Shown piece after piece: positions 5,873-47,164 of a stretch of DNA of 52,088 nucleotides. Every line of letters starts with the position of its first letter. The stretch's first letter is position 1. The DNA comes from Octopus bimaculoides (taxonomy: Eukaryota), in contig NC_068991.1 of assembly GCF_001194135.2 (NCBI RefSeq), positions 8,900,799 to 8,952,886 of the forward strand, written 5' to 3'. The position numbers were made by a program, and so were the translations under genes. Below the pieces are notes generated by a model. It had not been told where the DNA came from. It saw only the letters and a list, made by a program, of their open reading frames with translations, and made no database searches.

Positions 5873-5907
5873 ATCGATTGGCAGGCTGCAAATAGAAAGA
5901 CGACACC

Positions 5908-8900
5908 ATGGGGAGCGGACTGTCAACAGACTCGCGATCAACGGGTAATTCCGGTTCACAATCAAACCCAGGACTTCTGCTTCTTTCAGATCTTGTGAAT
6001 AAACAATATCCGTTTGAAAATCTCGTTTTCGAAGGATGCGGGACCAAAGCATTTGCTTACGTTGGAGCCATTAAGGTAATGCTTTTTTTCCTCGTTTTTT
6101 TAAACGATATCAATAAAGACTCTCTTCAAACGGACGCATTCAGTGTTGTGATTTTACTTAAGTCGATACCAGCCTCATTTTTTTTCCTTTTATAAAATGT
6201 TCAATTGACATTTATTGCTTTGTTTAATCACCGTTTTCTTTCAATTTAAAACTAATTTGGTTACTACTGTAATTCGACAGGTCCTCGAAAAAATTGATGC
6301 TCTTTCTAAAATCAAGCGATTTGCTGGTGTCGGCACTGGTGCTGTTGTAGCTTGTCTGTTGGCTGCAGGCTTCGACTGCTGCGCTCTGCGAGACTCGCTC
6401 AAACAACACTTGGAAAATGTACTTACTGGTAAGCATGTGATTTTTATACGAACAAGGGTTAAAAAAACTCCTGAGGTTGTGTTATGAAGATTGTTTGAAT
6501 CTTATTTGTCGTTAACAAAACAATTCTCTGCGCAGGAACGGACAGTGTCAATATTGTCTTAAGGCCGTGGCACACTTGAATAGTTGATTGTGGGGTACAC
6601 GAGGCTAGAGAATGCCCACTTCTGTAACTTGCAATCAATAAGTATTATAGGCCACGGTGCATTGCCTTGCTTGAAGTTTTGAAGTCTTATAATACTACGA
6701 AAATGTCTTTGGCTGTGCTCGTGGCTTTCATAGGCTTTCCACTGTTAATGTGTAGCATAAACGTCTTTCATACACAGACGGTTATTGTCTCGCTTCCAAT
6801 ATTTTACTTTGCTACTGAAGTAGTTTTGTTAACGCGAGTTGCTCTACAGGTCCCGAATGAATACATTAAACGGCTTGCTTTAAAAGAAATTTAATATTTC
6901 TGGTCTAATGCTTCCATTTCTATTTTATAGTAGAAACCTACAACTATTTGATCTACACACCAAAAGCTATAACTATCGAAACGTGTCATTTGTATCGTTT
7001 TCAGCCAACCAGTGCAGCAATAAGGGTCAAGTGAATGAATTACTTCATAAGTTTGGTTGGAATTCCGGCAATAAATTCCTTGATTGGTTGGGGACTCTTC
7101 TGAAGGAGAAATACGAAAACGCCGATATAACGTTCCAAGAGGTAAGTATTCGGTATCGTTAACCCTGATAGACATTGACTGATATTTCTTAGTCGGCACT
7201 TTAATACCTTAAATCTGTTCTTAATTTCTTTCACTGATATTTCAGCTTTATGAGAAAACCGGCAAGGAGTTGTGCATCGTAGTTCTGAATCTAAACCGAA
7301 TGCGAGAAGAGTACTTTCACTGCAAGACCACACCTACTACCGCTATCCGTTGGGCAGTTCAAATGTCCATAAGTGTTCCTGGTAATTTTTATCGGTTGTT
7401 TCCCGTTTGCTTGTTTATCATAGCTTTTTCGTATTTAAAACTTAAACAATAGTTTTGCGTAACAATTGGGTTGGTAGTCAATATCACAGAACAAAGGCGG
7501 TTTCTGATTGTATCTTTCAGGTCTTTTTCAACCCCTTACATTCAACGCTGGAAAATCGCGCAGAAACTATTACTTAGATGGTGGAATTCTCTGCAATTAC
7601 CCCATTCATTGTTTTGATGGTAAGTTTAAAAAAAAAAAAAATTTTTTTTTTAATATCTGAGTCTTCAGTACTGTTTTAATTGGTTTTGAAACTCCTTGTA
7701 GGTTGGTGGCTTTCAATGGAACCCGGGGAAAAAGTCCCTCACAAATATCGACCAACTTCTGACTTGAAGACTTTGATTCGAGAACGCTTCTCTAGATACA
7801 ACTCGAAAACCATTGGATTCGCACTGGTAAGGTTTATAAGTAAACAATATAATTAAGCGTAATTTTACATCGATTCTGAACATTCTAAAATTATCTGGTC
7901 ACCTGCTTAACTGATTCTAATTGATATCTTGGTCATTAAAATTTTTTTTTTATAATAGTTTGACGATTACCACTACCATGATGAAGTGGACATTGAAATG
8001 AAACGGAGACTAGATCAAACTAAAGCAGTGGTTCCTATACCAGCGACCAAACTTGGCAGGTGTGAATTTTAATAGTAATTGAATGACCGAGACTTGGCAA
8101 CAAAATCTTAGATCTTGCTTTTCCTTACGAAATAATTAACCATGTGCTACACAGCTAAGGTTTCATACCCATTGCTATTTTTTTTTTTATTTGTAATACT
8201 GCTACTTTTCTAAGCCGGAGCTTAATCAGGCTACATGGTATACATCAAAAAGAATTTACTGTTTATAAGTAAAGATATTTACTCGTTTGCAGCGACGTGG
8301 TTTCAGGTGCTGTCCCACTGCGCAATATTTTGGGCAGCTATTGTCTATATCCCCGGACCGACCGATTTCTTGTGAATTTAATAGACGGAAAGTGTGGAAG
8401 CCTTTTGTTCTGCACTACTGCCTGACACCCATTAAGTTATGTCCCTTAACATAACGGTTCGTGAAAAGAAACCGATATAAGTACCACACTTAAATGGGTA
8501 AAACATACCCACATACGATATGTTTCGCATTTTGCTTCTATACTTTCTAATTTGGTTCAGGACATCATTAAATCTTAACGGTTTAGGTTCAGAAGCTTAA
8601 GGTTTCTGCTGCTAAATGCCTCCCTTATTTTCTTGTGTAGACACAATAACTAGGTTACTTTCTAGGCTGATTTCTGTTCTTACTGCATCTTTACAAATGT
8701 TAACAATATTTTTCTCACTTTTTTTTTTTTCCAGAAAATACAAAGTTGATATAGAAAATGAGAATAAATTGAAAGAATTGTTTAAGACCTTTCCAGAAGC
8801 TACCAAAAAGCTTGAAACTGTTTGTACCAAAATAGCTACTTAACTATTGCTTTTAAGATATTTCCATCGCCGATTTGATCTCTTTAGCATATGGTTGCTT

Positions 8901-10085
8901 TAGCATAGTAACGCTTTATTTATACTTTCAGGTTTTGGAGACAATTAAAAAAGGTGATGATAATCTAGTGTCGGTTGTTCGATTAGTAAAGGAATTTACT
9001 GGGAAGGTAAATGTCAAAAAATTTTTGTTTTGCCATCACCAGTTGCTTACAACAAATAACGTTGCCACAATTTCATTTAACTATTTTAACCCACCTTAAT
9101 TTCTGCAGAAATCTAATTTCACTCAGTCTGACATCGAAGCATTGTTTGGGATTGAAAAGAACAAAGACCAGTGTTCGAAACTACTGAAGAATGCCAGTAC
9201 CAAGGAGATGGTGAGTAGTGTTGTTCTTAGCTGTTTCATTGGGGGTATTTGAAGGCTAAAAGGTCTTGTTCTTCTTACAGATCTCAACTATTGACATGCT
9301 GCATCTTCTTGATAAGACGAGCCGCTTTCTCTACAATCCCAACAAGCGTACATCAAGAACTGAAGTTAAGAGTATATTTTCATTCTGGGGTGCAATCAAT
9401 GGTGTTGCGCATGCAAACAGTAAATTATTGGTAAGCATCTCTCCTATATTTTCTTTGTCATTAGACTGCAGCTATGCTGGGGCACCGCTTTTATGTATCG
9501 AGTCGAACTAGTCAATCCAGGTCTTAAGGCTCCTACTCATCTAACGGTCTCTTGTCGAAATCGCCAGATGGTACGGCCTTGAATAAACTGACACCGCTTA
9601 TCAAACGGTGGACATGCAGCTGACGGACTACCAGTTTCCTTCTACCGAAACTGCTCATAAAGCTTTAGTTGACCCTGCGTTATAGTCAATACCACATAGC
9701 AGGATTGAACCTGAAGTACCAGTAATATCAAAGAATTTCTTAATCACACAAACATTCCTGTATCTATTACCGCTTTTATTGTTTTTTTTTCTTTCGTAAA
9801 TAACCAAATGAGATTAAAATCTTTGGTTTATTTTTTTTTTAAACCTCCAGAAAGAGAACTTGATGCGTACCATTGGTATTTACACTGGTCATGTTACTAG
9901 TGACGATGTTCAACTTGAAGAAGATGACGAAACTTACCTTTTTCAGGTGAGGTCTTGACATTTTTAGTTTTATTTCCCACCCTATATTATTTCCTTAAAT
10001 TCTTTCTGTAATTGCAAATTTCTTTCATTTGCAGCAAGGATGGAACAGTACAGTAACTTTCTTGCGTCAACTACAGAAGCAATAG
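5908..10085 (+). CDS. Patatin-like phospholipase-domain protein, paralog 1 (490 aa, 13 exons); catalytic Ser replaced by Gly
   Basis: GT-AG exons with consistent phases: 5908-6075, 6281-6428, 7005-7141, 7246-7381, 7521-7619, 7702-7826, 7959-8059, 8735-8819, 8932-9006, 9109-9210, 9281-9430, 9851-9946, 10035-10085 (1473 nt, no internal stop). Motifs: MGSGLS; NLVFEGCGTKAFAYVGA; KRFAGVGTGA; YLDGGILCNYPIHCFDGWWLSM; RTIGIYTGHV. AATAAA at 10252-10257. Confidence 0.88.
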
Positions 10086-11503
10086 TACCGCGTTAACTAC
10101 AAAATTGGCAACGACTATACCTTATCGATCGGCTGCTCCCGGAACACGAAATCGTCAATTCTACTGTGTTGGAATGTTAATTTTTGCTCGCTTCTTGGCT
10201 GTTATTGCTTTCGCAAAATTGTTTTTGCTCGTTAGTTTACCTTTTTATTGAAATAAAACTTCTTAATCGCTATTATTCGTCAATTCAATTCTTTAAATAC
10301 CCACAATTTGAAAATTCTCAAGTTTAGAATTAGTGAATTTATTTCTAAGGTTTGACTCCTTTTCGTTCATTTGAGCAAATCTTGACTGAATTCGAAGCAC
10401 AGGTCTCTGAATGGCTTGTATGTATTGGTAATCAAACGTTATACCATATTTGTAATTTGATACAATCCCTCGACTATTGCTGGTGTTACGTTCCAAAAAC
10501 CTACCGCGATAGGTGAAAATTCAGGAAGTAGAAACTTGCTGTTTATTTTAATTTGTATTTTATAAATGCAAAACTTTACGGAGGAATCAACGTAAAATTA
10601 AATAATGAACTGCGATATTCCGGTATATCGAGATCCCATCTTACGACTAGATGTGGAATTTTAGTTGAAAGAAAATAAGTCATGTTAGCCAACTGGCATT
10701 TATTCACTTGCTAGCACATTACATTTAAATACCTCACTAGTTGACTTTTCTATTATAGGTTAGACACCAATTTAACCATTGAATACGGATCTTTTTGGCT
10801 AATTTACTCATAACAATGCTAAAATTTTAAAGCTTTCAATTGAACTGCTTTGGCCTGATGAAAAACAAATCCAATATTATTCGCTCGATGTGCATATGGC
10901 AGAAGTTGGCATTTAGCTTCTGAATTAGCTGCAAGATAGACTAAAATACACTTTTTAGCTTTACAAAGGCGTAGTCTGATGAAAACCAGATCTAAGTAAC
11001 CTTCATTGTTGCTACTTTTTAGCTTTTAAAACCTTTGTTCGCTTATTTTGATACAAGTTTTAACAAAACCAGTCGTAGTTGACTGATCTTTAAGTAAAGC
11101 AAAGTGAGTATTACAAATGACGAAAGTTAGTTTGGCTTTATCTGGAAGAGATCCATTTCCACGCTCTAGATAGGCCGGTCATGTACTTGCATACAGATTT
11201 AGGAAGTAGAGGAAAATTTTCCCCGTCTTTCTGCATTTAGCTGAGAAATATTTCGAAGAAATAGTATTTCACGTTTTGTGATCGTGTATATTAGTGTTTC
11301 GAATTTTCGGTGAGAGATGCATAGATTTTGGTAAATAATTTTCCGATAATGAAAACTTTGCATATTTTAAATCTCTACGCAGGATTACGTCTGGTAAAAC
11401 CTTTTCGATTAGTATTACAGCTTAATCTGCGATGAAATTGCTCTGAGTTTAAAACTCCTAACACTGAAAGGAATCTGCATTTAAACGTTTTAATTTATTA
11501 GTG

Positions 11504-11670
11504 AAGGTGGCGAGCTGGCAGAATCGTTAGCACGCCGGGCGAAATGCTTGGCGACTTTTCGCCCATCCGTAAGTTCAAATTCTGCCGAGGTCGATTTTGC
11601 CTTCCAGCTTCTTCGGGGTCGATAAAATGAGTACCAGTTGAACACTTGGATCGATGTAATCGACTTACCA
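11504..11670 (+). mobile_element. tRNA-derived SINE, family A (GGCGAGCTGGCAGAATCGTTAGCACGCCGGGCGAAATGCTT head)
   Basis: A/B-box-like head and ...GGGGTCGATAAAATGAGTACCAG tail. Related copies at about 12640-12790, 22835-22925, 25110-25290, 28240-28390 and 28525-28650. Confidence 0.75.
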
Positions 11671-13489
11671 CTTTGTCTGAAATTGACTTTGTGACATTTT
11701 GGAAACTCTTTTTGCCCGGAATGTCAAAATTTCATTGATTCTTACGCAATCTTTATGGGATGTCCACAAAAGCTTAAAATAATTTATTGCGGTCTGAAAC
11801 GTATAAAACTATAAAGAAATTTGATATTAATATGCAAATTTAGTTGCCACCTATTTTAACTTTTGAAAATGTCTCGGCTTTGGCCATCCTGTAATTTGAA
11901 CCAGCAAATGATTTGCTCGTCTGAATCTCCAGCTCTGCTGAAAACAACATATAACTGACTACATTAGTATATAAAAAAGGGGCAGCTTTAAATTTTTAAC
12001 AGGAAAACGTATGTTAAACTTTGATCGGAGATTCATAATTTTCTTAGTTATAATACATATTACTTACATATAAGAATTCATTTCGTCCATCAGTGTAAAA
12101 TAAAAGCCACAAATGTCTGTACGAATAGATAACCTTTGATTTGTTACTTAATATTCTCATTCACACTTTAAAAATATAGCAAACGCTTTTCAATGGGTAC
12201 ATCGAGCAAATATCCATTTAGCTTACTTCCAAACCACGTGGCACCTTCGGCAAGTGTCGTCTACTATAGTCTCGTACCGACCAAAGCCTTGTGAATGGAT
12301 GTAAAAGGCGCCGGCTGTTTTTCACTTAATCTCCATTCAGTATACCACAGTTAAAAATATTTAAAGCCGATGCTATAAGGCGTAAATTCCTTCTCTAGCT
12401 TAACCTGGCTTGTTAGACTAAGGCTTTCTAAATAAAATAATTCTTTAAAAAAATCCTTGCAAAATGGAAACTACTAGACCTCCACCCTCGTCCACTGAGA
12501 CGAGCCGACGGAGGAGCCTGTATGTATTCGTTCGGCCAACTAGAATTAGCAGACAATTTATCCTTAAATTATTCTCCATTGTCCTCAAAAAAAAAAAGGG
12601 AACATCTACATTGTATAATATAGTCCGGAAAGAAAGCGGTGAACTTGGCACAATCATTAACAGTTGCATTACTTCCGGTATTACGTTCTGAGTTCAAATA
12701 CCGCCGAGGCCGTCTTTGCCCATTTATCCTTTCGGGATCGATAAAGTAAGTACCAGTTAAACACTGGAGTCAATGCAGTCGGCTAACTACTTCTAAAAAT
12801 GCTGGTCTTGTACTAAAATTTGAAACCATAATGTAGTCGTAAATGACTGAAAAATTAAACGCGATGATTTTTGTTCACCTTAGAGTATAATGTGGCAGCT
12901 ATAGTACAGTCATTCTATATAATAGAAATGGCAGCCAAGCCTACCTCAAATGTACTGATCAATAAATAAATGAAAATGATCAATTCAAATGGCACAAAAT
13001 AAAACGACGAGTAAACAGCATTAATAACAAGTTCTATCAAAACAGTTAACTTCGAAATCCAAGTGAATTAAAAATTCAATTGTGGCATGTAGTATGGTCT
13101 TTGGTAAGTACAGTAACAACTCGGGGCATGTTCCGATCTCATTACACGTCTTCAACTCAGCATAGATTTTACTAGTTGTTGCCAAATGTATGAACGACTG
13201 AGGGAATAAATAGATTTTTAGTGAGAAATATTGGTTTATTAGACACTTTAACAACAATTATATTAAATATATGAATATACATACTTCATGCAGAAATCAT
13301 CCATGGGGAAATTCCGTCTGTCGTTCTAAAAGGCTGTGAATGCAACGTAAGAATAAAGCTTGAAGGCAAGTGTGACATATTCACTGAGGTGAAGCACAGA
13401 GTTAATCGTAGACATTGTTTGTAATCTTTGTGCTTAAAATATGAATAGACACTTGACAGCAACAACGACGGTAGTGATAGCTAGCTGGT

Positions 13490-13850
13490 ATACTCTTTTA
13501 CTTGTTTCAGTCATTTGACTGCGGCCATGCTGGAGCACCGCCTTTAGTTGAGCAAATCGACCCCAAGACTTATTCTTTGGATGCCTAGTACTTATACTAT
13601 CGGTCTCTTTTGTCGAACCGCTAAATTACGGGACGTAAACACACCAGCATCGGTTGTCAAGCGAAGTTGGGGGGATAAACACAGACACACAAATATATAC
13701 ACACACATACACAGTTTCAGTTTCCGTCTACCAAATCCACTCACAAGGCTTTGGTCGGCCCGAGGCTATAGTAGAAGACACTTGCCCAAGGTGCCACGCA
13801 GTGGGACTGAACCCAGAACCATGTGGTTGGTTTCAAGAAATCATTGGAGT
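13490..13850 (-). mobile_element. SINE family B, near-complete copy
   Basis: High similarity to the 41894-42237 and 47314-47655 copies. Confidence 0.8.
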
Positions 13851-15797
13851 TGTATTGTTTAATTAACTGAGTCAAATTTCAGTCGTCAATGAAAACCATC
13901 ATCACAACCAAACTTAAATTCTTTCTAACAATATTAAAGAACAAGGAAGTAGTGATGTTGCCAATATATGGGGTCAACGAAGAGGGAAACCGCCCCCGCC
14001 CCCGCGGACGTCGACGTAGCCTGGATAGTAGTCGCAGTCTTGCTCGGTANNNNNNNNNNNNNNNNNNNNNNNNNNNNNNNNNNNNNNNNNNNNNNNNNNN
14101 NNNNNNNNNNNNNNNNNNNNNNNNNNNNNNNNNNNNNNNNNNNNNNNNNNNNNNNNNNNNNNNNNNNNNNNNNNNNNNNNNNNNNNNNNNNNNNNNNNNN
14201 NNNNNNNNNNNNNNNNNNNNNNNNNNNNNNNNNNNNNNNNNNNNNNNNNNNNNNNNNNNNNNNNNNNNNNNNNNNNNNNNNNNNNNNNNNNNNNNNNNNN
14301 NNNNNNNNNNNNNNNNNNNNNNNNNNNNNNNNNNNNNNNNNNNNNNNNNNNNNNNNNNNNNNNNNNNNNNNNNNNNNNNNNNNNNNNNNNNNNNNNNNNN
14401 NNNNNNNNNNNNNNNNNNNNNNNNNNNNNNNNNNNNNNNNNNNNNNNNNNNNNNNNNNNNNNNNNNNNNNNNNNNNNNNNNNNNNNNNNNNNNNNNNNNN
14501 NNNNNNNNNNNNNNNNNNNNNNNNNNNNNNNNNNNNNNNNNNNNATACCACCATCAGCAAAAACAGAAGAAGAAGTAAGCGGAACAGAAGGCGAATGGGT
14601 GACAACAGGGAAGAAAAGGAAGAGAAAAAGGAGGAAACCAGGTAAAATAAATACTGAGACCCACCCCACCTAACTCCCACCCACACCCTCTTCTTCCCAC
14701 CCGCTCCCTACAGACACTGAACCTACTCCCCTCCAACACGAAAACAAACACAGTCAGACACAAGTAATTCAACCTCCCTCCCCCCCCGGAAAAAAAGAAG
14801 AAAGGAAACTATGTAATGATGTATGATAACACAAAATTGTGTGTGAAGAAATTAAAAAGCTGAAGGACGTTAGAGCGGTGGACACTCACAAGTTCGACAA
14901 CGTGCAAGGGTGACATTGCTGCCTGTTGTTGGACGAGAACCAAAGGGAAAAAATTTTTAGATTCAAGAAAAGATTTACAGTATGGCAAGTCGATCTGGAC
15001 ACTCAAAATTCGCCAGGAAATATGAACTACATGCTTCTACTGAAGAAATACGGAGTGTATATTTTTGAAGGCTCCGGGTTCAAAAAGAGAAAGTGAACAG
15101 AGGTAAAAATGAAGTAACCCAGAGATGGGGCCGAGGAAATTTCATTCCATTTCTCATCTTCATCTTATCATTCATTATAACATACGCTTTTCTTTTCTTT
15201 TATTTGTTATGTGTCCCCACATGTGATTGTGTTATCCCCTCTGTGTTAGCCCCTTGTGGGCAATAAAGAAAAAGAGTGTCAATTCCAACTAGTCTGTGAT
15301 TGGACGGGTGCGACTCGATACCTTATAGAGACATGTCAAATGATATGAATAAAATTAAATCAGTTATGGGCAGCATACGGCCCATGGGATTTTCTGGATG
15401 GCCGCCTAACAAAAAAATTACTTTCCAAAAATGTTTAGCTATGCGGTCCACCTGGTGATGAGTTATGTCTAATGCGATCCGCTTCTCGATAAAGGTTGCC
15501 CGTGCTTGACTTAAATAGCCAGTGGATGGAAAGATGCGGTGAAAGCATCGTAGGATAAAATACATGGGATAAAATACATGTCATGTGATCAGAAAATAGA
15601 TGGAAAATAGAAAAGAAAGCAGATGAAAAAATTATCCACACAAATTTTGCTTGTTTTACGTATAACTTTAATGGAACGGGTGGGAACTGAACTTGAAAAT
15701 TTCAGTAATATAATTGCAATTCGCAGAGGTACTTTTCACTTCACCTGGTTGCGTAAAATAAAAACGGGCGGAACAATTTCAAATGGAATCTACTGAA

Positions 15798-15826
15798 ATT
15801 TGCATAGGTCTTAGACAAGCTATAAA
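15798..15826 (+). promoter_or_regulatory. Candidate core promoter of paralog 2: octamer + TATA box
   Basis: ATTTGCAT at 15798-15805 (AAATTTGCATAGGTCT shared with paralog 1) and TATAAA at 15821-15826, 40 bp before the ATG. Confidence 0.5.
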
Positions 15827-15865
15827 TTGATTGCCAGAGAGCAGCGGAAGAATGAAACTAGCAAC

Positions 15866-18800
15866 ATGGGAAACCAAAGTTCACGTAATCTCGGATCTGA
15901 ATCAAGCCCAGGACTTCTGCCTGTAACATCCCTCAAGAAACAGCAGTACCCATTTGAAAATCTAATCTTTGAAGGATGTGGTGCCAAAGCATTTGCTTAT
16001 GCTGGAGCAATAAAAGTAAGTTTTTTTTCCTCCGCTTTTTTCTTCAATAGTTCTCATTCTGAAATACGTAAACAATGTTTTCTTTTAAATTACTCTGATA
16101 AATATATAGCTACTTAAATATACAGTTGAAAACTATCGTATCTTATTTTTCAAAGATTGACTGTAGTTTTATTGCTTTTTTTTTTTTTTTTTTAAACTTG
16201 AAAGTTCTTACATTAATCGCAATCGGAAGCCTTGTTCCCATAAACTCTTCTCTTTTAAACTTCTGAAAATCTTGCAGGTCCTCGAGAAAACTGGCATTCT
16301 TTCTAATATCAAACGATTCAGTGGTGCTGGAACTGGTGCTATTGTAGCCTGTCTTTTGGCCGCTGGTTTCAGTTGCAATTCTCTGCAACAGACCGTCAGT
16401 GAACACCTGGAAAAGTTCTTGTCTGGTAAGAATACAATTTTTGATATTCCTTAATACTGCCACTCTCCCTCGATAATTTTGCAGAGAACAACTTCTGGCT
16501 TACCTGTTCGAATCGGAGTCTCCACTGCAATTGATAAATAGTATTGTTGCACGTAATTAGTGTTTATAACTGATTCTAGCATTGTTAAAATTCGAATTTT
16601 AGGATTCGATATTCTATAGCTTTCGTATAACTCTTGGTACTTGTTGTTGGATCTCCTACATTTATTTGCATTCGTAAGTCACGGCAATAAACTAAATCCA
16701 TGTGTGTCAACTAATCTTAATCTAGAACAATTCTTTTACCCTTTTCAGACAACCAGTGCACTGATGAGATTCCCCAAGATGAGATGTTCGAGAAGTTCGG
16801 TTGGAATTCTGGCCAAAAATTCTTTGACTGGTTCGGTGATATTCTAACTCAAAAGTGTGGAAACGCTGACATAACATTTCAAGAAGTGAGTACACAATGC
16901 ATATATTTATTACAGGTGATATGTATTGGGAGAACAATTCTAACCTTATTTCCTGTTCATACTATTTCAGCTTTACAATAGGACTGGCAAGGAATTGTGT
17001 ATCGTTGCTGTGAACTTAAACCGAATGAAAGAGGAGTATTTTCACCCCAAAACAACACCTGATGTCGTTGTTCGTCGTGCAGTCCTTATGACCATCTCTG
17101 TTCCTGGTAATTATGCAATCTACAATTCAATTTTTCCTTCTCTTTAACCTAATGCTTTGCTGTATTATTCCAATGTTTTAAAAATCGATGTTTTTATGTT
17201 AGACATTTGACTAGCTCCATGTAGCTTTTAGCCTATAATACCTCATTTGTAAATTTGCCCACTTGTTAATTAAAATTTTTTTTAGCCCTCTTGCTCTCAC
17301 TATTTTGCTTCATCCTTTTATCTTTGAATACGATACTATATTTTGAAAACGCATCAAAACTTGGCTCTGACTTTAAAAATGTCAGTTCTTTTCTGTTCTT
17401 CCCATGACCGCTGCAAACCAGTTTTTGAATACTTTTCACTCTTTATTCTTAATAGGAATGTCCCAGCCTGTGAAATTTAGTGTGGCCGATTCCCCCGAAA
17501 GCTACTACCTTGATGGTGGGATGCTTTGCAACTACCCCATTCACTGCTTCGATGGTTGGTGGCTATCAATGCAATCCGACAACTCATTTCTTCAGAAATG
17601 TCAAACTCCTGATATTAGAACGCTGAATAAAGAACGTTTCTCTGGCGTTAACTCCCAAAGCCTCGGATTTATCATGGTAAGTTTTAGTTTCCTCAAACTT
17701 TCATATTCGTTTCAGTACTGCAGTCCACAGCGTTCCGTTTTGTGTCCTGTCTTATATAGATGTCCCAGTTAATCACTATCTAGTTTAGTGAATAACTAAT
17801 ACCAGTAAACTAGAATAATTTACAAAAATGGTATAATATAAGTTACTGTGTAATGTTTCTGTAAGAATTTTCAAGAACTCCGAAATTAACACTAAAGCCT
17901 AAAGTTCAAAAGATTTCTAATTTTGACTTCATTTGGTTTCTCAGCGCATTAAATTTGTGTTCTCGTTTAAATCCAGTTCGACGATTATCACTTCGCTAAG
18001 ATTTATGATGCAATGAAGGAGCGCCTGGATCTTACGGAAGCTGCTATCGCCATACCCGAAAGTAACCTTGGCAAGTAAGTATTTTCGAGTACATATGATG
18101 TATGACAATGTGAGTGGGCATAGACCATAACTTCAGATAATATGGTCTTTATTTAAATACGAAGTTAATATTTTCATAGCTGATGGTATTTAGTTTCAAC
18201 AAAATTATATTTCTTTTAAAGGAAATACAAAGACGTTGGTCAAAACATTGAGCAGATGAGACTGATATTTGAGAAGTTTCCAGAAGCCATGACAAAACTT
18301 CGTGAAGTAAGTTACAAATTTTCAAATTTAAATCTGTCTATTGAGCTTAATCCTGATTATGTAAATGGCTTAAAATATAACTGAATTCCTGTCTATAAAC
18401 AGGTTTTGGAGAAAATCAAAGACAGCAACAATTTGGTATCGGTTTCCGAATTGACAAAGGAGATAACCAAAGTAAGCTTTTAGCCTAATTTCCTCTAAAT
18501 CGTATCTGTCGTTCACTTTGATACCCGAATACTTGAAAATGGTTTTGGTCACTTATCTGTTTCTAGGAACATTTCTCTGCGATAGAAATTCAGGCGTTAT
18601 TTGGAGTTGAAAATAATGAAAATGAGTGCCTTGCTTTTTTCCAAAAGCATTTTGATGCAAAGGAGATGGTGAGTTAGATTGCCCTTAGATATATTCAAAC
18701 TTGTAATGGATTTTATTGTAAACTTTTCACTTATTTCTTTCAGCTTCCAGTTACTGAAGTTATAAGCTTTATTGAGAAAAGAACCTCTCGCAAGTTTTAC

Positions 18801-19322
18801 AGCTATAGTAAGATTTCAACAAGGTCGAATGTGACCAATTTATCGTCATTCTGGGGGACAGTAATTAATTCCATCCACGAAATCAACAAATTGGCTTCGG
18901 TAAGTGTCGTTATATATAGTTAAGACAATGTCGGCAATATATAAGATGTTTGAACTTATTCCTCGTGTCTATCTTCCAGGAAGACGACTTGACCCGTACT
19001 GTTGGTATTTACACCGGTCATATTAGTAATAATGATATTGATCTGGATGAAGCCGACGAAATATATTTATTTCAAGTGAGTCCTCGATTTCTTTTTCTCG
19101 CGTCTCCAAATTCTCCGTCTCCTATAATTGTGACTTTCTAATTTGTAGCATGGTTGGAACTGTACAGTGGCCTTCTTGCGACAATTCGGTGCCCTATCAA
19201 TTACAACACCAGAAGAAATGGTATCTATCAGTACCCAGGCACCACCACATGAACCAAACCAAGAGCTCGAAACAACAACGGAACCGACAACTGAATCTAA
19301 ACCCACGGACCTTGAAGATTGA
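15866..19322 (+). CDS. Patatin-like phospholipase-domain protein, paralog 2 (523 aa, 12 exons); catalytic Ser replaced by Gly; T/E/P-rich tail
   Basis: Exons 15866-16015, 16278-16425, 16749-16885, 16971-17106, 17456-17676, 17977-18074, 18222-18306, 18403-18471, 18567-18668, 18744-18899, 18980-19075, 19149-19322 (1572 nt, open). Motifs: MGNQSS; NLIFEGCGAKAFAYAGA; KRFSGAGTGA; YLDGGMLCNYPIHCFDGWWLSM; RTVGIYTGHI. AATAAA at 19393-19398. Confidence 0.88.
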
Positions 19323-19836
19323 CTTTAATGTTTATATGCACCTGGAATCTTTGTTATCGCTTTATTTTTTTGGCCTCGTTTTGACTTCTAGAAATAAAAT
19401 AAATTGTCTTTGAACTATATTTTTGTCTTTACTATTTCTTTTAGCACTACATCGCTTAGTGCGTAAAAACTGAAAGCTCTTGAAGACGAGCAGCTCCTCG
19501 TGTTCAAAGTTACCATTGTGGGCGCAGGTTTTGATGTCAAAACATAAACAGCCGGTTATACATGCCACAAAGCATCTGGTTCAACTCTGACAGTTTCGCT
19601 AATGTTAGGTGAGCTTTTAATCGAACTCGGAAAAGCTGAAAGGTGGTTGATCTCGGGACAATTTACAGTCAGCCGAGACAATTACAAGGCCAATTGCCTA
19701 ACGTTGAAATCTTTCAACTGGAAGTGTCCGTCAAATGACTTTAGAACTTTTGTCGCAAGTCGCTATACATTACAACCCCATAACCCTGGTTCATTCTGAA
19801 AACGATGGTCACTAAGAAATTGATGGGTTTTTATTT

Positions 19837-20019
19837 AAAAAAAAAAAAAAAATCGATCTTGGTGAGGCATTGAAATTAAGATTTAGGAAATGCAAACTGT
19901 AGAAAAATTATCTACTTATTTCGAGAAGTATACTGTATTTTCTTTAGTTTGTATTTCCTAGAACTTAATCTTACTTTCAATGCCTTACCAAGATCGAATT
20001 TTTTTTTTTTTTTTTTTTT
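19837..20019. repeat. Hairpin/inverted repeat capped by poly(A) and poly(T) tracts
   Basis: Arms at about 19851-19906 and 19938-20000 (ATCGATCTTGGTGAGGCATTGAAA / TTTCAATGCCTTACCAAGATCGAAT), loop about 31 nt. Confidence 0.75.
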
Positions 20020-21854
20020 CCACTGTTCGGTCTTTATTCGAAAATTTAGCATTTTCTTTTTATCCATCCAAGATTTAAATTTGTTTCATAATCAATATCG
20101 TTAAATTTCGAACAGAACTTTTCTGATGCAACTCGCGATAGCAATAATTTGGTATGTTGGAAGCATCTGATCTTTCGTCTACCAGTCTAGTTAACTTCAC
20201 TTTGGCAAAATATAAAGTCTATTTATTTATTTATTTATATGTTTCAGCCAATTGGCTGCGGTCATGCTGGTGCACCGTTTGACATTTCCATCAAACTCGA
20301 AGGACATTGCCTGTGCAAGTTTTCATATGACTGACAAATATTGAACTCGTTTCAATTGTTACTTCACGACTTTACTCCATTACAACTTATATATATATGC
20401 CAATAGTGTTATAAGTTTTGTTCTATAATCCAGTGTTTTTTGTACTTGGTACAGCCAGGAAATCGCGTGCATTTTGTCTCCTCTCTGGAAATTTAACCAA
20501 ATTAAATTTCACAGCTTTATATTTAAGTCTATAATCTGTTTCTTAGGAATTTTTCGGTTAATATCTTAACTTTTAAAATTTGCTTCAGTAAAATTAGAAT
20601 TTGTCACTTTTATAAGCAGTAACTTCGCATCAACTCTCACGCATTTGAATCTTATTCATGACGCTTGCACCTTGCCTATTTTCTGATTTCTGTAGCCAAT
20701 CGCCTTGTTCCCAATATACTTCCCCCCCCACCCATGTAATTTACTTCCATTTACAGACCATAAACTTGATGCTAGTTAATACGAACGCTATTCAAACCTG
20801 CAGCCACCCCCACCTTAGGTAGTGGCAGTATGACAATATAGAAACCACATGATAGCGCAGATGCAGTTTGGGGACTCAACTACCAAAGACTAACACAAGC
20901 GATATTACGAAACTACTAATCATTCTACAATACATTGAGTAAAATCTTCGATAACATTAGTTCGACTTGTTGCATAAACTTTTTCTCCAATAGCAAAGTG
21001 CTCAAACATCTTGAATCTGTTTTAGCTAGTAAATAGCAATTGCGATAAATTCGCAGTATCCCGATTTTCGGTACAGTCATCCAAAACTTGTAAACTGTAA
21101 AATCTGTCGTCTTTTTGGCTAGGCGTAGCGGTGGCAGCAATGAAATGCTAGTTCTCTCGAATATAGATTTAACTTAATGGAGCTATCGAAATGCTATTGC
21201 TTAACCAGTTCATCTTTGTATCCTTCGCCAATTGTTTCAATCTATAGATTACTGCGTTAGTTCCTAACACGCCTGTTTTCAACTGAGAAATGACTCAGAA
21301 GCCACGACTTGATATTTTAGTCTGTCGATTTCTTAAAAGTGGACCATCGTAGGCAAAAGGACCTGGTTGTGGGGGAACCAAAATGAAACTATTGCCACGC
21401 ATCAAGCAGCACACCATTAAGTCTCTTATTCGCATGCGAACGGTTTTAAAGTGTGTGCAGGTATGAGAAACTTACCTACAGCAGCTTCTTTCATTCCACC
21501 GACTTTCTATTTGACATTTCCCAGTTCTGAATAATTCACTGCAACCGAAGATGAATAAACATTGACTACGTTCATTGCATGATTTTTACAGACGCGACAA
21601 ATTCTATTTGATCAATTTTATCGATACGTCTCTGAACGTCAGTTTGGTGACTGGTCATTCAGCAACTTGGGCGATCTTACGATACCAGTCACACGACTGT
21701 CACTTAAGAAGCACGTGTTTATTCACATTCGTGAAGATGATCGTCGGTTTCCGTAAAAGCTTACTTTTTTCACATGCGGAAAAGGGGATCTTTTGAAGTC
21801 GTAGTGCGATTGTATGAGGGATGTTCTTTCGAAGTTGGTGTGAAGCAGAAGAAT

Positions 21855-21885
<31 letters not shown>

Positions 21886-21888
21886 GAA

Positions 21889-22135
21889 AGCGCGTGGCTC
21901 AGTGGTTAGAGTGTCGAGCTTACGATCATGATGTTGTGAGTTCGAATCCTGGACCGGGCTGTGTGTTGTGTTCTTGAGCAAGACGCTCCAGTTCACTCAG
22001 CTGTAGAAATGAGTTGCGACGTCACTGGTGCCAAGCTGTATCGGCATTTCCCTTGGATAACATTGGTGGCGGGGAGGCCGGTATGTATGGGCGACTGCTG
22101 GCCATCCACCAACAACTTTGCCAGTTACACCACAT
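21889..22135 (+). mobile_element. tRNA-derived SINE, family C (GCGCGTGGCTCAGTGGTTAG head; TTCTTGAGCAAGAC core)
   Basis: A box TGGCTCAGTGG and B box GTTCGAATCC followed by a non-tRNA body. Related copies at about 40990-41210 (-), 43170-43390 (+) and 37960-38230 (-). Confidence 0.75.
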
Positions 22136-23680
22136 CTGATGGTTCTTAAGTCCAACTTTTCTCTTGAAATTATTCGGAAGAGTAGCGGTATAAAAGAAAT
22201 GGTAAACATCTCCCCCAACTTAATTATTTTTTTTTTGTTTACGTAGCGTGTTATTCTATTTTGCACAAATGAATTCTAAAAACTTTTCCGTTCCAAATTC
22301 AACGTTGGTTTCTTCTACGATACCGCAAAGTAAAAATTCTGTTTAACTAGGGATCTAACACCACACAATCTTGAACTGAAATGTCTACATATCCTCGAGA
22401 CGAGTAAAGCACTGTAAAATTTAAGCTGAAAATCCATCTAAGAAAGCCTTCTTGGTTAGTAGATTTAACCTGCTCCCAAGTTTGACATAATAGGTTCTAG
22501 GATACCTTTTTAGGCCAGATGAACAAAACACGATTAGTGCCAACGACTTGCTGAAATTGATTTTAAATTTATGCACATGCCCAGTAAGCTCGAGGGGAGG
22601 GGATTAGTCTATTACATTGATCCCAGTGTTCAACTGGTAAGCCAACATCGACGGGATTTAAACAACTAAGACAGACGAAATGCATAACACTTCGCCCGGC
22701 TTGCACGATCCTGGCAGATCGCCGCCTGTACCAGCTGAAATATTAAAATAGTTATTGCATGATCATTTCCGATATATTTCAGTGAGCGGCACGTCACTTC
22801 GACGCCAGATAATTGTAAATAAAATAAGCAGTATGGTGGTGGCGAAACGCTTAGCAGTATTTCGTTTGTCTTTATGTTCCGAGTTTAAATTCAGCCGTGG
22901 TCGACTTCGCCGTTCATACTTTCGTAGTCGATAAAAAGGTCAATCTAAGAGTATATGTAGATATATCTCCATTGAAAACCTGCTACAAGCAGATTGGAAT
23001 TGAGCAGTTCATTTGAAACTGCTTGTGTTGATAATGAAGGAGATAATTCCTGATCACACATTCTGACCAAAGTCGTGGTCGTCTGAGGTAGAGGAAAAAC
23101 GTTAACACGATTGGTTGCGATTCGAATGAGAAGTGGTTACCGTAATCTATCAGGTCAAGGATCACCCGTTGAATCGATGGCGTTTTATGCAGGTTAATAT
23201 AGAAAAGGGGACTCAAAAAATAACTATTTTAGGTAAAGTAAAGAGTGTACGTCGAATATTCAGAAATGTGACGAAGTTGGTTTTGAAGTTAAAACTGTCT
23301 GCAAAGTAGGACAGTCATTTTTCTACTGATTACATCACTGATCTTAAATGTAGTACAGTAGCAGTTTTAAAGCTCGATCTTAAATTTTTTAATATTTGAT
23401 ACACGGTATTTATGCACAATGTTAATAATTCGTAGTCATTTTAACAGATTCTGTTGAAACGATTGTATATTAATTTGTGAACAAAAAAAAAATATAACCA
23501 CATACATTCGTTGTAAAACTTTATTTCGATAAAGACAATTCATTAAAGCCATAAACTACTATTTCCTTGAAATAAACCAAAAACTGCAAATTCGAGACGA
23601 GTACAAATTGAACAAAGATTTTTCGGGTATTCGTAGCCATTATTGAAGCAAAATTCGTTTAAAGGGATTCGTCAACGGAT

Positions 23681-26600
23681 TCAGGAAGTGTCTGAACTGC
23701 TAGATAACAAGTTTTTCTGTCCTGACGTAGTAGGGGTGGATGTCTGGGTAATCTCTCGCAAGAACGCCACAGTGCAGTTCCAGCCATGCTAAAAAAAAAA
23801 AAAAAAAAAAAGATTGAAATTACACAAGATATTCCTGGTGAGAATAACAGTCTGAGAATGGAATATACAAACTCACCTGATACAGGTAGATTGCGTCGGC
23901 TTCCTGCAGGCCAGTATCATTATTGGTAACATGGCCAGTGTAGATACCAATAGTACGGAACAAGTCGGTTTTCTGTAGGTTAGATATCAAACGTAAAACT
24001 AAATGTTATAAACTGTCTTCAAGTTTTGAAATTATATGTAAAACGTTATCGTACTATACAATTGTTACTGACGTAGCCGGGCACTACTCACATTACAGTA
24101 CCGGCTTGGGGCAACCCAAGTTAAGACTTAAGGTGGCCTCCCTTTAAATTATATCAAACCTGGCAAATTAATAATGTGGATTCTAATTATTTTGAAACCA
24201 GTTACCTGAAGATAAGTTCTTAGCCACTAGCGGAGCTAGAATGTGTCGCCCGGGGCGGCCTATCCATTTGCCTTTAACAATTTTGAATTACTTGGAAAAA
24301 TTAAAAAAAAAAAAAAAAGCTGCACCTACCGACACTGATTTGTTCTTTTCGTTCGATACACTATTAACCGCTCCCCAAAATGAAGACAAATTAGTCACTG
24401 CAAACGTTGGTGTTATCTTGCTGTAAGCGTAGAAATTCTGCCAGTGTCTTTTCTCGGCAATAGACAGAATAGTGCCAATTGACAGCTAAGAGATAATATA
24501 GAAAGATATATTAGCGCTCGGATTCCTCAAATATTCACGTTGTTTCAAACTAATCATCCGTTATCTCAGTTTCTAGATTTCGGTAATGCGATTTTCTTTT
24601 TCTCAAAGAAAACCTTGTACGATATGTGTTCGGCTGGATCTGGCAGTTTGTAAAAGTTTAAAAGGCTACGTTAAACTATCTTGCAGACAATTTAGCGGCA
24701 AAATAAATTCAAGCTTGATAACCTACCCGATCTTCACTGTTGGCATATCCTCGAAGCAATTCCAAACATTCTCTTTCGTCATTATCCACACCAAATAATA
24801 CCTGGAGCTCAGCCGAAGAGAAAACAGTCTAAGAAAAAGAAATGAAAGCTACGTAAATGTATTTGAAAAAATCCTTATGATTACAGACTGATCGTCTACG
24901 TATCTAAACAAACGGTATGGATTACATACGAAAATAATTTACTCACGCTATCGGTAAGTTCTTTTGCCAATCTAACAATAGATACTAAGTTGTCATCTTC
25001 CTGAAGCGTCTCCAAAATCTGAAAAGTTACACCATAACCAGTATTAAATACTAATAAGGTAAAAGCTATCGAGTCTAAAATACTTGTTTCAAATTTTGGC
25101 ACATGGCCAATAGCTTAGCGGGAGGGACTAAGTCGATTACATCAACCCCAGTGCTCAACTGGTACTTATTTAATTGAACACGAAAGGATGAAAAAGGAAA
25201 GTTGAACCCCAGTGGAATTTGAACTCAGAACGTAATGGCGGGCAAAATGCCAAGTATTTTGCTCAGCGTGCTAACTATTCTTCCAGCCCGCTGCCTTTTA
25301 TCAAAATTTAAGGATACCGACAGAGAAAAGAGTCAAATTCTTATTAAATTCACACCCTACTCCATTAAAGAGAAGCATGCATATCCAAGATACATTAAAA
25401 TGAAATGAATAATTATTTAAGCCTTTTATCATCGGCTAATTCATCAGGGTTGCACTGGGATAGGCAAAAACTTTAGCTCGAATTGAAAACCTAATTAAAA
25501 AGCGGGCGGTAGACACTCACAGTTCCTAGTTTTTCACTGGCTTCTGGAAAGCCCTCCAATTGTAGTCGCATCAGTTTCAGCCTTTCCTTGGCCTCTTTAC
25601 ATTTCCTTAGAATTTAAAAAAAAAAATCAGAAAAGTGCATTACACTAAATATTGCCACCAATGACCTTAAGATCAATCTAATACTGGTTTAGAACGTTAT
25701 TGAAAGACAGCGAGAAGAAAAATACTTACTTGCCAAGTTCGGTTGCTGGTGTAGAGATAACGCCATCGACTTGTTCAAGTCGCCGTTTCATTACATCGTA
25801 TGTATCATTGTTGTGGTAATCGTCAAACTGGAAAAAAGTTGCATCAAACAGTAAATTGACCGATGCTATTGAAACTTAAGTGTGGCTGCCTGGAGACTAT
25901 AGATACTTATGAAAAAGTATCAATCAAACATTTAAGGAGCAAATAGGATTTTAAAAAAACTTACAGTAGTAGATTTAATGAACGAAATACATTAAAATTA
26001 TCAAATATTTATGAAGAAAAAAAATCCCTTTACCGTCATAATGCCAAGGCTTGTGTGGTTAAATCCAAAGAAACATTCAATCTCCAAAGATCTCAAGTCA
26101 ATAGACGGTTGACATTTGTGAAGAAAGCGGTCATCAGGCTCCATCGATAGCCACCATCCTATAGAAGAATTTGAAAGGTCAGGAGAACTGCAACACCTAT
26201 TTTTAAAATTTTTTTATTATTATAAAGAAAACGTCGCTGCACATACCATCAAAGCAGTGAATTGGATAATTGCAGATAATCCCACCATCCATGTAGTAAT
26301 CTTCAGGGGATTCATCCAGACTTAATTTGAGGGGACGGTATATACCTATATAAAAAGAGGTCAAGTACGAATAATTTAGCCAATTGGTCTTAACTAAATA
26401 TTAGTCAGGTTACCATATTTCGTGAAATGAAAATTTTCTGTTAAACTTATGAACATAAAAAAAATCAACTAAGTTTCACTGAAGGAGTACGGGGGGAAAG
26501 CACATTTATAGTTAAATCAACGAGAAATTAAGTTGGAAGCTATGCAGAACTAGCTTAAATTGTAGAGAAAACAGAAGTAATCGCAAGTCAAAATAGTAAT

Positions 26601-27045
26601 TCAGACGTAAAAAAAAAAATTAAAAAAAAAAATTCAAAAATTTTAATTTTAAACCGGCGTTAGTGCGTTTACGACCCATAACTTAGCGATTCAATAAGAG
26701 AGACGAATAGAATCAGCACCGGGATAAATTCATTATACTAAAAATTGAAGACGGTGCCCTAGCACTACCACTGTCTGATGATCGAAACAAAGTAAAAGAA
26801 AAAAAAAATTACCCGGTATAGACATGGCTAAGGAAATTGCCCGTCGGACGACAAAGTCGGGAGTAGTTTTCGGGTGGAAATATTCCATCTTGTTCAGATT
26901 TAAATTCATGACCGGAATACACAGCTCGTTACCGGTTTCGTCGTATAACTGAAATAACGAAAATAAAATTAATCAGAATTAAAGGGTTCCATTTCAAACG
27001 GAAAAAAGATGTTCACAGCAGATACACCGCGGTAAGAGAGAGTAG

Positions 27046-27076
<31 letters not shown>

Positions 27077-28005
27077 TTCGTTTGATTAAAAACCATGAAC
27101 TCACCTGTTGAAAGGTAACGTCAGCGTCTTGAAACTTCTGTATCAAAATACGCCCTAACCAATCGAGAAACCTATAGCCGTCATTCCACCCAAAGTTATG
27201 AAGCACCTCTTCTTGGCGAACCTTGGGGGTATATTGAATATCTGAAATGGAAATCAGAAGGCTGGAAATTCGGTACAAAATATTCAGTCCTGGGTACATA
27301 GTTTATTCATAGCAATCAGAAAATTGATTTGTAGACTTCAGAGCCCGTTAGTTAGTCAGTCATCAAGAATGTCTAAATTTCGGACATCCCGAACAGTAAA
27401 ATTTCTAATCAACGGTTAAGGAGATTAACGGAATGTAATTCGTACACTGAAAAGGAAAGAAAAGAAAAAAAAAAAAGCTTACCGAACGAAAAACTTTGCA
27501 GGTGCATATCTAGTAGACACTGTACAGAATCTGGGGCAAAACCAGCAGCCAAGAGGCAAGCTACGATAGCACCACTACCCATTCCTGCGAATCGCTTAAT
27601 ATTAGAGAGAGCACCGACTTTTTCGAGGACCTGTTGGATTATGAAAGGAGGAAACTCAAGACGATACACGAAGAGATGGAACTACAAAATCTAATTTTTA
27701 TATTGGAAAATAACTTTAAAAATTAATTACAATAAAGGCTGAAAAGGCAATTAGACAGGTTCGAGACCAGCGAATTCGATAAACTTAGTAACAATTTTTT
27801 TTAGCAGAGAAATATCAAAGATGTTGGGGGAAAATACCTTCAAAGCTCCAGCATAAGCATAGCCTTTAACACCGCATCCCTCAAAGATAAGGTTTTGGAA
27901 CGAATAACGTTTACCCATTAGATCAGTTAGAGGCAGAAGCCCTGGGCTAGCTTCAGAGCCAATGTCACGTGGGCGTCTTGTGTTACACGACAGTGATCCT
28001 CCCAT
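23681..28005 (-). CDS. Patatin-like phospholipase-domain protein, paralog 3 (509 aa, 13 exons), convergent with paralog 2; catalytic Ser position is Gly
   Basis: Minus-strand exons 28005-27838, 27630-27483, 27241-27105, 26948-26813, 26345-26247, 26158-26034, 25827-25730, 25605-25521, 25018-24947, 24828-24727, 24485-24330, 23972-23877, 23788-23681 (1530 nt, open). Motifs: MGGSLSC; NLIFEGCGVKGYAYAGA; KRFAGMGSGA; YMDGGIICNYPIHCFDGWWLSM; RTIGIYTGHV. AATAAA (minus strand) at 23525-23520. Confidence 0.88.
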
Positions 28006-28045
28006 GCTGCTTGGTTTTTGTTTTTTTGCACATCATCTAACATGG

Positions 28046-29754: not shown

Positions 29755-30125
29755 TTCTTTTAACTTGTTTCAGTCATTTGACTGCAATCATGCTGGAGCA
29801 CCGCATTGAAGGGTCTTAGTTGAGTAAATCGACCCAGACTTATTTTTTGGTCTCTTTTGCCGAAAAGATGTTATGGGGACATAAACACACCAACTCCAGT
29901 TGTCAAGTGGTGATGGGAGACAAGCACAGACACAAAAATACACACACACACACACATATATATATACGATGGGCTTCTTTCAGTTTCTGTCTACCAAATC
30001 CACTCACCAGGCTTTGATCAGTCTGAGGCTATAATAGAAGACACTTGCCCAAGGTATCAAGCAGTAGGACTGAACCTGGAACCATATGACTGGGAAGCAA
30101 GCTTCTTACCACACAGCCATGCCTA
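29755..30125 (-). mobile_element. SINE family B, complete copy
   Basis: Family B tail, CA-rich middle and head (CTTCTTACCACACAGCCATGC). Confidence 0.8.
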
Positions 30126-34841: not shown

Positions 34842-34884
<43 letters not shown>

Positions 34885-34910
34885 CTATACATATATATTA
34901 TGCAAATATA

Positions 34911-46401: not shown

Positions 46402-46435
<34 letters not shown>

Positions 46436-47125: not shown

Positions 47126-47164
<39 letters not shown>

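Follow-up and report, generated by a model that had tools for sequence, protein, structure and literature searches.

The 52,088-nucleotide (nt) stretch of Octopus bimaculoides DNA analyzed here (hereafter the window) contains three expressed, spliced patatin-like paralogs, g1, g2, and g3, which encode proteins of 490, 523, and 509 amino acids (aa) and in which glycine stands in the place of the catalytic serine. Gene models were built from spliced complementary DNA (cDNA) contigs of four public runs (X14, X15, X16, and X19), and exon ends were refined to GT-AG splice sites. In window coordinates, the genes and their exons are as follows.

5899-10272, + strand: g1 (LOC106880002), 13 exons, coding sequence (CDS) 5908-10085, 490 aa; from cDNA contigs; equals P0005
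5899-6075, 6281-6428, 7005-7141, 7246-7381, 7521-7619, 7702-7826, 7959-8059, + strand: g1 exons 1-7
8735-8819, 8932-9006, 9109-9210, 9281-9430, 9851-9946, 10035-10272, + strand: g1 exons 8-13
15854-19417, + strand: g2 (LOC106880001), 12 exons, CDS 15866-19322, 523 aa; from cDNA contigs; equals P0004
15854-16015, 16278-16425, 16749-16885, 16971-17106, 17456-17676, 17977-18074, + strand: g2 exons 1-6
18222-18306, 18403-18471, 18567-18668, 18744-18899, 18980-19075, 19149-19417, + strand: g2 exons 7-12
28023-23507, - strand: g3 (UniProt A0A0L8G0A1), 13 exons, CDS 28005-23681, 509 aa; from cDNA contigs; exact database sequence
28023-27838, 27630-27483, 27241-27105, 26948-26813, 26345-26247, 26158-26034, 25827-25730, - strand: g3 exons 1-7
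25605-25521, 25018-24947, 24828-24727, 24485-24330, 23972-23877, 23788-23507, - strand: g3 exons 8-13

A first-pass annotation of this DNA, made from the sequence alone, had proposed three intact, spliceable paralogs, two in tandem on the + strand and the third convergent, with exons of 148, 137, 136, 102, and 96 nt in common. The cDNA returned the same protein lengths, exon sizes, and arrangement (g1 and g2 in tandem, g2 and g3 convergent). The 148-, 137-, and 136-nt exons are exons 2 to 4 in all three genes, and the 102- and 96-nt exons lie further 3'; g2 has one intron fewer, its exons 5 and 6 being merged into one of 221 nt. Joining the exons yielded a single open reading frame (ORF) per gene with no stop or frameshift, and a GT..AG placement was possible for 35 of 35 introns. 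Spliced transcripts, which the annotation had suggested looking for, were thus recovered as full cDNA with GT-AG at every junction. The template-switch oligo was found directly at the cDNA 5' ends of g1 and g2; the g3 contigs start at 28023, where 22 unaligned letters of the X16 contig may represent the same oligo. Since the 5' ends of the transcripts lie 9-18 nt upstream of the ATG in all three genes, the Met-Gly N-termini (MGSGLST, MGNQSSR, and MGGSLSC) are real. The poly(A) tail of g1 was located at 10272 in a cDNA contig. The assembler depth of the full-length contigs was ~120-340 in one 2021 cDNA library, and the last exon of g3 was present in at least nine RNA runs of several studies and absent from others. 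The only coding variants seen in the cDNA were two synonymous changes in g1, A158V in g2, and L95I in g3. Searches of the window with tblastn revealed no further fragments of the family outside g1-g3, and a scan against Rfam gave no matches.

The cDNA data also contained odd joints between A/T-rich, low-complexity intron or flanking stretches (16175-16196, 19831-20021, 23790-23813, and 27044-27079), as well as very deep contigs with a word depth of up to ~140,000 at 26982-27162. The joints lack GT-AG ends; like the deep contigs, they are apparently artefacts of the cDNA libraries that arose from poly(A)/poly(T) mis-priming or from repeats, and not splicing.

All three proteins matched the Pfam patatin family (PF01734), with scores of 77.4, 74.6, and 70.5 bits against a cut-off of 27.7 and over profile positions 1-188 of 191. 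The active-site columns were read from an alignment of the three proteins with their 120 best homologs.

6034-6051, + strand: g1 glycine-rich (oxyanion) loop, eroded, G-C-G-T-K-A
6326-6340, + strand: g1 nucleophile elbow, G72-V-G74-T75-G76, with Gly74 (GGC) in the place of serine
7577-7585, + strand: g1 D216-G-G motif, dyad aspartate kept
15974-15991, + strand: g2 glycine-rich loop, eroded, G-C-G-A-K-A
16323-16337, + strand: g2 nucleophile elbow, G66-A-G68-T69-G70, with Gly68 (GGA) in the place of serine
17512-17520, + strand: g2 D210-G-G motif
27862-27879, - strand: g3 glycine-rich loop, G-C-G-V-K-G
27571-27585, - strand: g3 nucleophile elbow, G72-M-G74-S75-G76, with Gly74 (GGT) in the place of serine
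26281-26289, - strand: g3 D216-G-G motif

The homologs split into two groups, a large canonical one that combines EF-hand and patatin domains and a small serine-less clade from cephalopods. At the nucleophile column of this main alignment, serine was present in all 105 canonical relatives and glycine in 14 of 14 clade members, in agreement with the earlier observation that the catalytic serine is missing from all three octopus proteins. The following position (+1) was occupied by threonine or serine in each of the 14 clade members, whereas the canonical sequences (n = 105) have alanine (88), valine (11), isoleucine (2), phenylalanine (2), or serine (2). Relative to the canonical oxyanion loop, G-G-G-x-K-G, cysteine replaces the second glycine in g1-g3 and alanine the last glycine in g1 and g2, with the lysine retained. 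The dyad aspartate persists as DGG in eight of nine octopod copies, where the loop lysine is also kept. It is replaced in four of the five cuttlefish-side copies of the main alignment and in Argonauta P0003, giving the forms NGG, NGS, NAS, and SGS; further cuttlefish-side copies mostly lack the aspartate too and retain threonine or serine at +1.

The canonical group was found in molluscs, cnidarians, echinoderms, hemichordates, amphioxus, annelids, a bryozoan, a brachiopod, and a few bacteria. Its members carry FEGGGxKG, GxSxG, and DGG motifs along with Pfam EF-hand domains, mostly start with Met-Gly, and are still present in octopuses (P0018 and P0044); they matched the octopus proteins with E-values of 1e-60 to 1e-87 over ~90% of the length at 30-36% identity. 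We conclude that g1-g3 descend from this putatively N-myristoylated EF-hand + patatin family of marine invertebrates. The serine-less clade comprises g1-g3 and LOC106878189 of O. bimaculoides, orthologs in O. sinensis and O. vulgaris, three Argonauta hians genes, two Acanthosepion (Sepia) pharaonis genes, and sequences from ENA and Logan that the tree places beside the cuttlefish. In a neighbor-joining (NJ) tree the clade received 100% bootstrap support, as did each of its octopod and cuttlefish-side (decapodiform) halves, and g1 paired with Argonauta P0007 (99%), g3 with Argonauta P0003 (96%), and g2 with the g3 lineage as its sister (96%). Clade members scored at least 579 bits against a clade profile in a word-indexed search, compared with at most 457 for the rest, and an exhaustive profile search of 1.84 billion representatives returned five clade members at 616 bits or more versus 457 for the rest. 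The profile searches support the proposal, already made in the first-pass annotation, of a lineage-specific family, which here appears as one of coleoid cephalopods (Octopus, Argonauta, and Acanthosepion). Because the glycine is invariant across the octopod and decapodiform subclades, a single loss of serine is indicated, before the octopod-decapodiform split and before the g1/g2/g3 duplications; the loss, which had been placed ahead of the duplications, is much earlier still.

A fourth octopod paralog, LOC106878189 (P0134; O. vulgaris cluster representative P0008), lies on a different chromosome, outside the window, and has orthologs in O. sinensis, O. vulgaris, and Argonauta. Its sequence has degenerated further than those of g1-g3, with an elbow of GVGTSG and a glycine loop of LEGNNVKS. 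On contig ctg103517l of ENA ERZ21867824 (76.5 kb, 34% GC, gene-poor, and grouping with Acanthosepion in the tree), the cuttlefish-side members P0009 and a 483-aa neighbor are uninterrupted ORFs at 10001-11614 and 17475-18926, and P0014 and P0194 are found on the same contig. These intronless clustered copies, set against octopus genes of 12-13 exons, suggest a retrocopy origin followed by tandem duplication there.

The substitutions in the clade extend beyond the nucleophile. Among the 105 canonical members, 81 columns show a conservation of at least 90%, and 77% of the cells in these columns are kept in the clade, including the motifs HPKTTP, CNYPIHxFDGWWLSM, RTVGI, and GW. The positions lost were S68 (the nucleophile), S107, P110, N111, P120, T159, M164, R184, and E269, together with the eroded glycine loop. 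The EF-hand pattern PS00018 occurred in 0 of 17 clade members versus 102 of 137 full-length canonical members, and no Pfam EF-hand match was obtained in g1-g3 at E ≤0.01, while the C-terminal RTVGIxTG and QGW motifs of the EF-hand + patatin family are retained in all three. An AlphaFold2 model of g2 had a mean predicted local distance difference test score (pLDDT) of 88.7 and a predicted TM score (pTM) of 0.86, and helix-loop-helix pairs persist in its C-terminal domain. Foldseek matched this model with a probability of 1.00 to CapV, VipD, CapE, PlpD, patatin-17, ExoU, and iPLA2-beta, and cPLA2 was also matched. Catalytic, probably substrate-facing, and calcium-binding residues have thus been lost selectively on a preserved scaffold, a pattern that is typical of pseudoenzymes. 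The EF-hand + patatin parentage, the loss of the EF-hand calcium sites along with the serine, and the fourth paralog elsewhere in the genome all go beyond what the first-pass annotation had noticed.

Membrane targeting, which that annotation had assigned to all three proteins, was borne out only in the form of an N-myristoylation consensus (MG..x[S]), matched by each of the Met-Gly N-termini given above. No signal peptide or transmembrane segment was found in g1-g3, and hydrophobicity peaks in the elbow helix, which is buried in the patatin core. Gly2 is invariant throughout the serine-less clade, g3 also has Cys7, and the Met-Gly start is inherited from the parent family (105 of 167 sequences). 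These N-termini point to cytosolic proteins that probably carry a myristoyl anchor; with no signal peptide present, the secretory role once suggested for them is unlikely. No evidence emerged for the immune role suggested alongside it, at which none of the analyses was aimed.

For estimates of selection, ortholog CDSs were rebuilt and checked against the annotated proteins, g1 with O. vulgaris and g2 and g3 with O. sinensis. Pairwise values are given for nonsynonymous (dN) and synonymous (dS) divergence and for their ratio by NG86, YN00, and maximum likelihood (ML).

g1: dN 0.076; dS 0.15; dN/dS 0.50 (NG86), 0.77 (YN00), 0.67 (ML); NG86 bootstrap 0.33-0.72; patatin domain 0.39
g2: dN 0.055; dS 0.21; dN/dS 0.26 (NG86), 0.36 (YN00), 0.35 (ML); NG86 bootstrap 0.18-0.39; patatin domain 0.17
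g3: dN 0.157; dS 0.19; dN/dS 0.81 (NG86), 0.96 (YN00), 1.04 (ML); NG86 bootstrap 0.59-1.11; patatin domain 0.50

The first-pass annotation had named ratios well below 1 as support for function. Such ratios hold for g2 (0.26-0.36) and to a moderate degree for g1 (0.50-0.77) but not for g3 (0.81-1.04), in which residues 237-335 gave a dN/dS of 1.56. In each gene, constraint is strongest in the patatin domain. Amino-acid identity to the ortholog was 74% for g3 and 84-89% for g1 and g2. If all nonsynonymous changes were tolerated, ~6, 4, and 11 nonsense changes would be expected in g1, g2, and g3, respectively, and none were seen (P ~0.003, 0.02, and 1e-5). Marks of pseudogenes (stops, frameshifts, lost splice sites, or absence of transcription) were not found in any of the three. 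The genes are fast-evolving yet maintained and are not dying pseudogenes, as had been proposed; that proposal stands on the intact frames and expression of all three copies and is qualified by the weak or mixed constraint on g3.

The results are best explained, in our view and with some reserve, by g1-g3 being functional genes for putative myristoyl-anchored pseudo-phospholipases of the patatin fold that would no longer act as Ser-Asp acyl hydrolases. An error of assembly or annotation as the source of the missing serine can be given practically no weight. An assembly gap does fall within the interval marked in the first-pass annotation, but the gap (14050-14544) is intergenic, and cDNA contigs of three or four independent runs give the exons unchanged, with exon 2 of g1 unaltered in three cDNA runs and its elbow free of variants. 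Exon 2 of g2 and that of g3 were identical to the window in DNA contigs of four runs, each from a different sample, which refutes an artefact for these two genes, and the same glycine occurs in orthologs of three other species. No serine was found at the nucleophile position in the orthologs of those three species, in the DNA of g2 and g3, or in the cDNA of g1-g3; its loss is real and non-polymorphic in the data examined. It is also improbable that one or more copies, chiefly g3, are under relaxed constraint and drifting toward a transcribed but functionless pseudogene. The dN/dS of g3, its bootstrap interval, and its lower ortholog identity fit such drift, but g3 has neither a stop nor a frameshift, where some 11 nonsense changes should have accumulated had nonsynonymous change been free. 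Its only indel relative to O. sinensis is a single in-frame one of 9 nt, O. sinensis, O. vulgaris, and Argonauta all carry intact orthologs of it, its splice sites are preserved, and full-length cDNA is available from several runs. Moreover, the difference between its patatin domain (0.50) and its middle region (1.56) is fitted better by a mixture of constraint and positive selection than by uniform decay.

Somewhat more room must be left for g1-g3 still acting as acyl hydrolases or transacylases by way of a non-canonical nucleophile, which could be the +1 threonine or serine or another residue, although we regard this as unlikely. A hydroxyl residue stands at +1 in every clade member versus 2 of 105 canonical sequences, the octopod copies retain DGG and the loop lysine to the extent described above, the patatin domain is the most constrained region (dN/dS of 0.17-0.50), and plant patatins with a GxGxG box, which provide a parallel for a non-canonical nucleophile, are reportedly active. 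The +1 residue is, however, also retained in cuttlefish-side copies that lack both the aspartate and the loop lysine (NGS, NAS, NGG, and SGS), so that its conservation is independent of a catalytic partner, which argues against a Thr-Asp dyad. It lies at the first turn of helix 69-78 in the g2 model, a position suited to capping, and several residues more than 90% conserved in active relatives were lost alongside the serine. On the basis of the model, a replacement helix cap is a likelier role for the +1 residue than that of a new nucleophile. Several observations nonetheless weigh against the pseudo-phospholipase interpretation. The plant pPLAIII proteins, with the same GxGxG box and DGG, are reportedly active, and by that analogy loss of serine is in itself no proof of inactivity; DGG and the loop lysine are retained in all three octopus proteins; and the g3 ratio of 0.81-1.04, with an interval that spans 1 and a middle region at 1.56, indicates weak or mixed constraint. 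The term pseudoenzyme, used in the first-pass annotation, is still the best reading, with the plant patatins as its principal caveat.

A sequence of events consistent with the pseudo-phospholipase interpretation can be outlined. The parent EF-hand + patatin family would be a calcium-regulated phospholipase A. In the ancestor of coleoids one of its copies exchanged the nucleophilic serine for glycine, which would take a single base change if the codon went from AGY to GGY. The same clade lost the calcium-binding residues of its EF-hand pair and other near-invariant residues and retained about three quarters of the conserved fold positions, with tandem duplication following later, in octopods. 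Membrane binding through the myristoyl group would persist, with the preserved patatin surface and C-terminal helical domain as possible sites for lipid head groups or a partner protein. The proteins might then serve as regulators, competitors, or scaffolds, for example toward the still-active EF-hand patatin paralogs of the octopus, and not as lipases. A more speculative extension, which we put forward tentatively and consider doubtful, is that these are coleoid-private, myristoyl-anchored dead phospholipases, maintained from a time before octopuses and cuttlefish diverged, whose pocket senses or sequesters lipid, or which dock onto and control the active calcium-regulated EF-hand patatins, with the g3 rates and the tandem expansion reflecting ongoing conflict. 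For lipid sensing, the G-x-G-T-G pocket could be a phosphate or anion nest; for conflict, the opponents would be, e.g., pathogen lipases or effectors.

If truly non-catalytic, g1-g3 and their clade would constitute an animal family of patatin-fold pseudoenzymes whose origin is clear and whose active sisters reside in the same genome, and hence a clean setting in which to ask what function a lipase fold serves once it is no longer a lipase. The parent family is widespread in marine invertebrates and giant viruses and apparently entirely uncharacterized; a literature search returned no paper on cephalopod serine-less patatins or on the parent EF-hand patatins.

The DNA of the window is AT-rich (36-39% GC) and contains five N gaps; the chromosome-level assembly records g1 and g2 together on one scaffold of 80.9 Mb. 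The gap between these two genes is the one considered above.

14050-14544, no strand: intergenic assembly gap that follows the g1 poly(A) site, precedes the g2 start, and is outside all gene models

This gap begins 3.8 kb past the g1 poly(A) site and ends 1.3 kb short of the g2 start. Among short-read contigs of four DNA runs over 13200-15400, contigs entered from both sides and none bridged it. Its stated length and the continuity across it are provisional, and no exon, frame, or splice of g1-g3 depends on it. To its left, 13422-13865 is occupied by an interspersed repeat of very high copy number, with a word depth of up to millions in genomic runs, and related copies lie near 1-750, 2900-3300, 29800-30200, 41900-42300, and 47250-47700, many of them cross-matching within the window; this repeat probably caused the gap.

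Upstream of g3 and in the same orientation lies NHLRC2 (a thioredoxin-like domain plus NHL repeats) at 37298-49577 on the - strand, where nine tblastn segments match the O. bimaculoides protein. The RefSeq model XP_014785280.2 (1131 aa) joins residues 1-679 of NHLRC2 to residues 55-509 of g3 and skips g3 exon 1. In the cDNA contigs, by contrast, g3 has its own 5' end at 28023. Owing to the fused model, A0A0L8G0A1 sits in a protein cluster headed by NHLRC2, and the fusion is probably also the reason why, in O. vulgaris, the orthologs of g1, of g3, and of the fourth paralog bear misleading "NHL repeat-containing 2-like" names. Both these names and the RefSeq model need correction. At 34755-35897 on the + strand, two adjacent ORFs (243 and 136 aa), judged by eye, resemble what we take to be a remnant of a mariner/Mos1-type transposase, with the motif HHYDPQTKQQPMEWHH.

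The closest known relatives of the clade are the EF-hand + patatin proteins of marine invertebrates, which are annotated as "PNPLA domain-containing," "YqhO-like," or "putative protein R571" and include the octopus copies LOC115216174 and LOC115216501. The two groups have in common the Met-Gly start, the patatin domain, the HPKTTP, CNYPIHxFDGWWLSM, and RTVGIxTG motifs, and the helical C-terminal domain. They differ in that the canonical proteins possess FEGGGxKG, GxSxG, DGG, and an EF-hand loop, whereas the cephalopod clade has glycine for serine, no EF-hand pattern, and about ten more residues replaced. Serine-less copies also occur sporadically elsewhere in the same animal family, namely Helobdella robusta T1FSH4 (GSGTG), Paralvinella P0118, Lottia V4AP82 (GTNYG), and some unnamed sequences. 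Among 117 further representatives aligned at the elbow, the residue was serine in 108, glycine in 8, and asparagine in 1. Nucleophile loss is thus recurrent in the family. As in the cephalopod clade, the Helobdella, Paralvinella, and Lottia copies often have threonine or serine at +1 and an eroded glycine loop and aspartate, but they are scattered single genes of annelids and one gastropod outside the clade, scoring at most 420 bits versus at least 616 for its members. Two of them formed a weakly supported (75%) sister group to the clade in the NJ tree, which may be due to long-branch attraction. The cephalopod clade is the sole case in which the loss of serine became a conserved, expanded family.

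By profile, the best matches in the PDB were the bacterial proteins VipD (Legionella), ExoU (Pseudomonas), and PlpD (E of 6.5e-24, 5e-21, and 2e-14), followed by a cyclic-dinucleotide-activated phospholipase and then, for the C-terminal part, by calmodulin-like EF-hands. CapV, VipD, and CapE matched the fold of the g2 model with E ~1e-10, and the patatin core and the layout of glycine loop, elbow, and DGG are common to all. The ExoU/VipD/YqhO-like architecture noted in the first-pass annotation is therefore a fair description at the level of the fold; in sequence, the closest relatives of solved structure are VipD, ExoU, and PlpD. In contrast to the octopus proteins, with which they share 12-17% identity, VipD, ExoU, PlpD, CapV, and CapE all have the catalytic serine, and the octopus genes are endogenous animal genes with introns, as opposed to genes for secreted effectors or genes of defense islands. 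The NCBIfam model for VpdC gave 57-61 bits against a cut-off of 1000, and the CBASS/anti-phage models gave 23 bits against 200 (NF041079) and 20-23 against 400 (NF053870). With scores this far under their cut-offs, these families are fold-level relatives only. Giant-virus patatin-like proteins of the mimivirus R571 type provided full-length structural matches, with a TM score of 0.50-0.56 and a root-mean-square deviation of 4.6 over 480 columns for LCMiAC02; Yasminevirus and Edafosvirus proteins were also matched, identity between the giant-virus and octopus proteins was 16-20%, and the R571 name recurs in the annotation of some canonical animal relatives.

The nearest functional parallel is found in plants. 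The pPLAIII subfamily has a conserved GxGxG esterase box in place of GxSxG, usually keeps DGG, has been maintained for a long time, and has reported lipase activity (PMC7031755, PMC4253999). Like the octopus clade it is a patatin subfamily with GxGxG; unlike it, pPLAIII is plant-specific and has no EF-hand-derived C-terminal domain. The parallel looks independent, the two having been compared, beyond their shared Pfam domain, by description. Toxoplasma TgPL1 was considered as a further Ser-to-Gly precedent and set aside, since papers that mention it do not describe such a change. Pseudoenzymes are common, and the GxGxG patatins of plants set a precedent.

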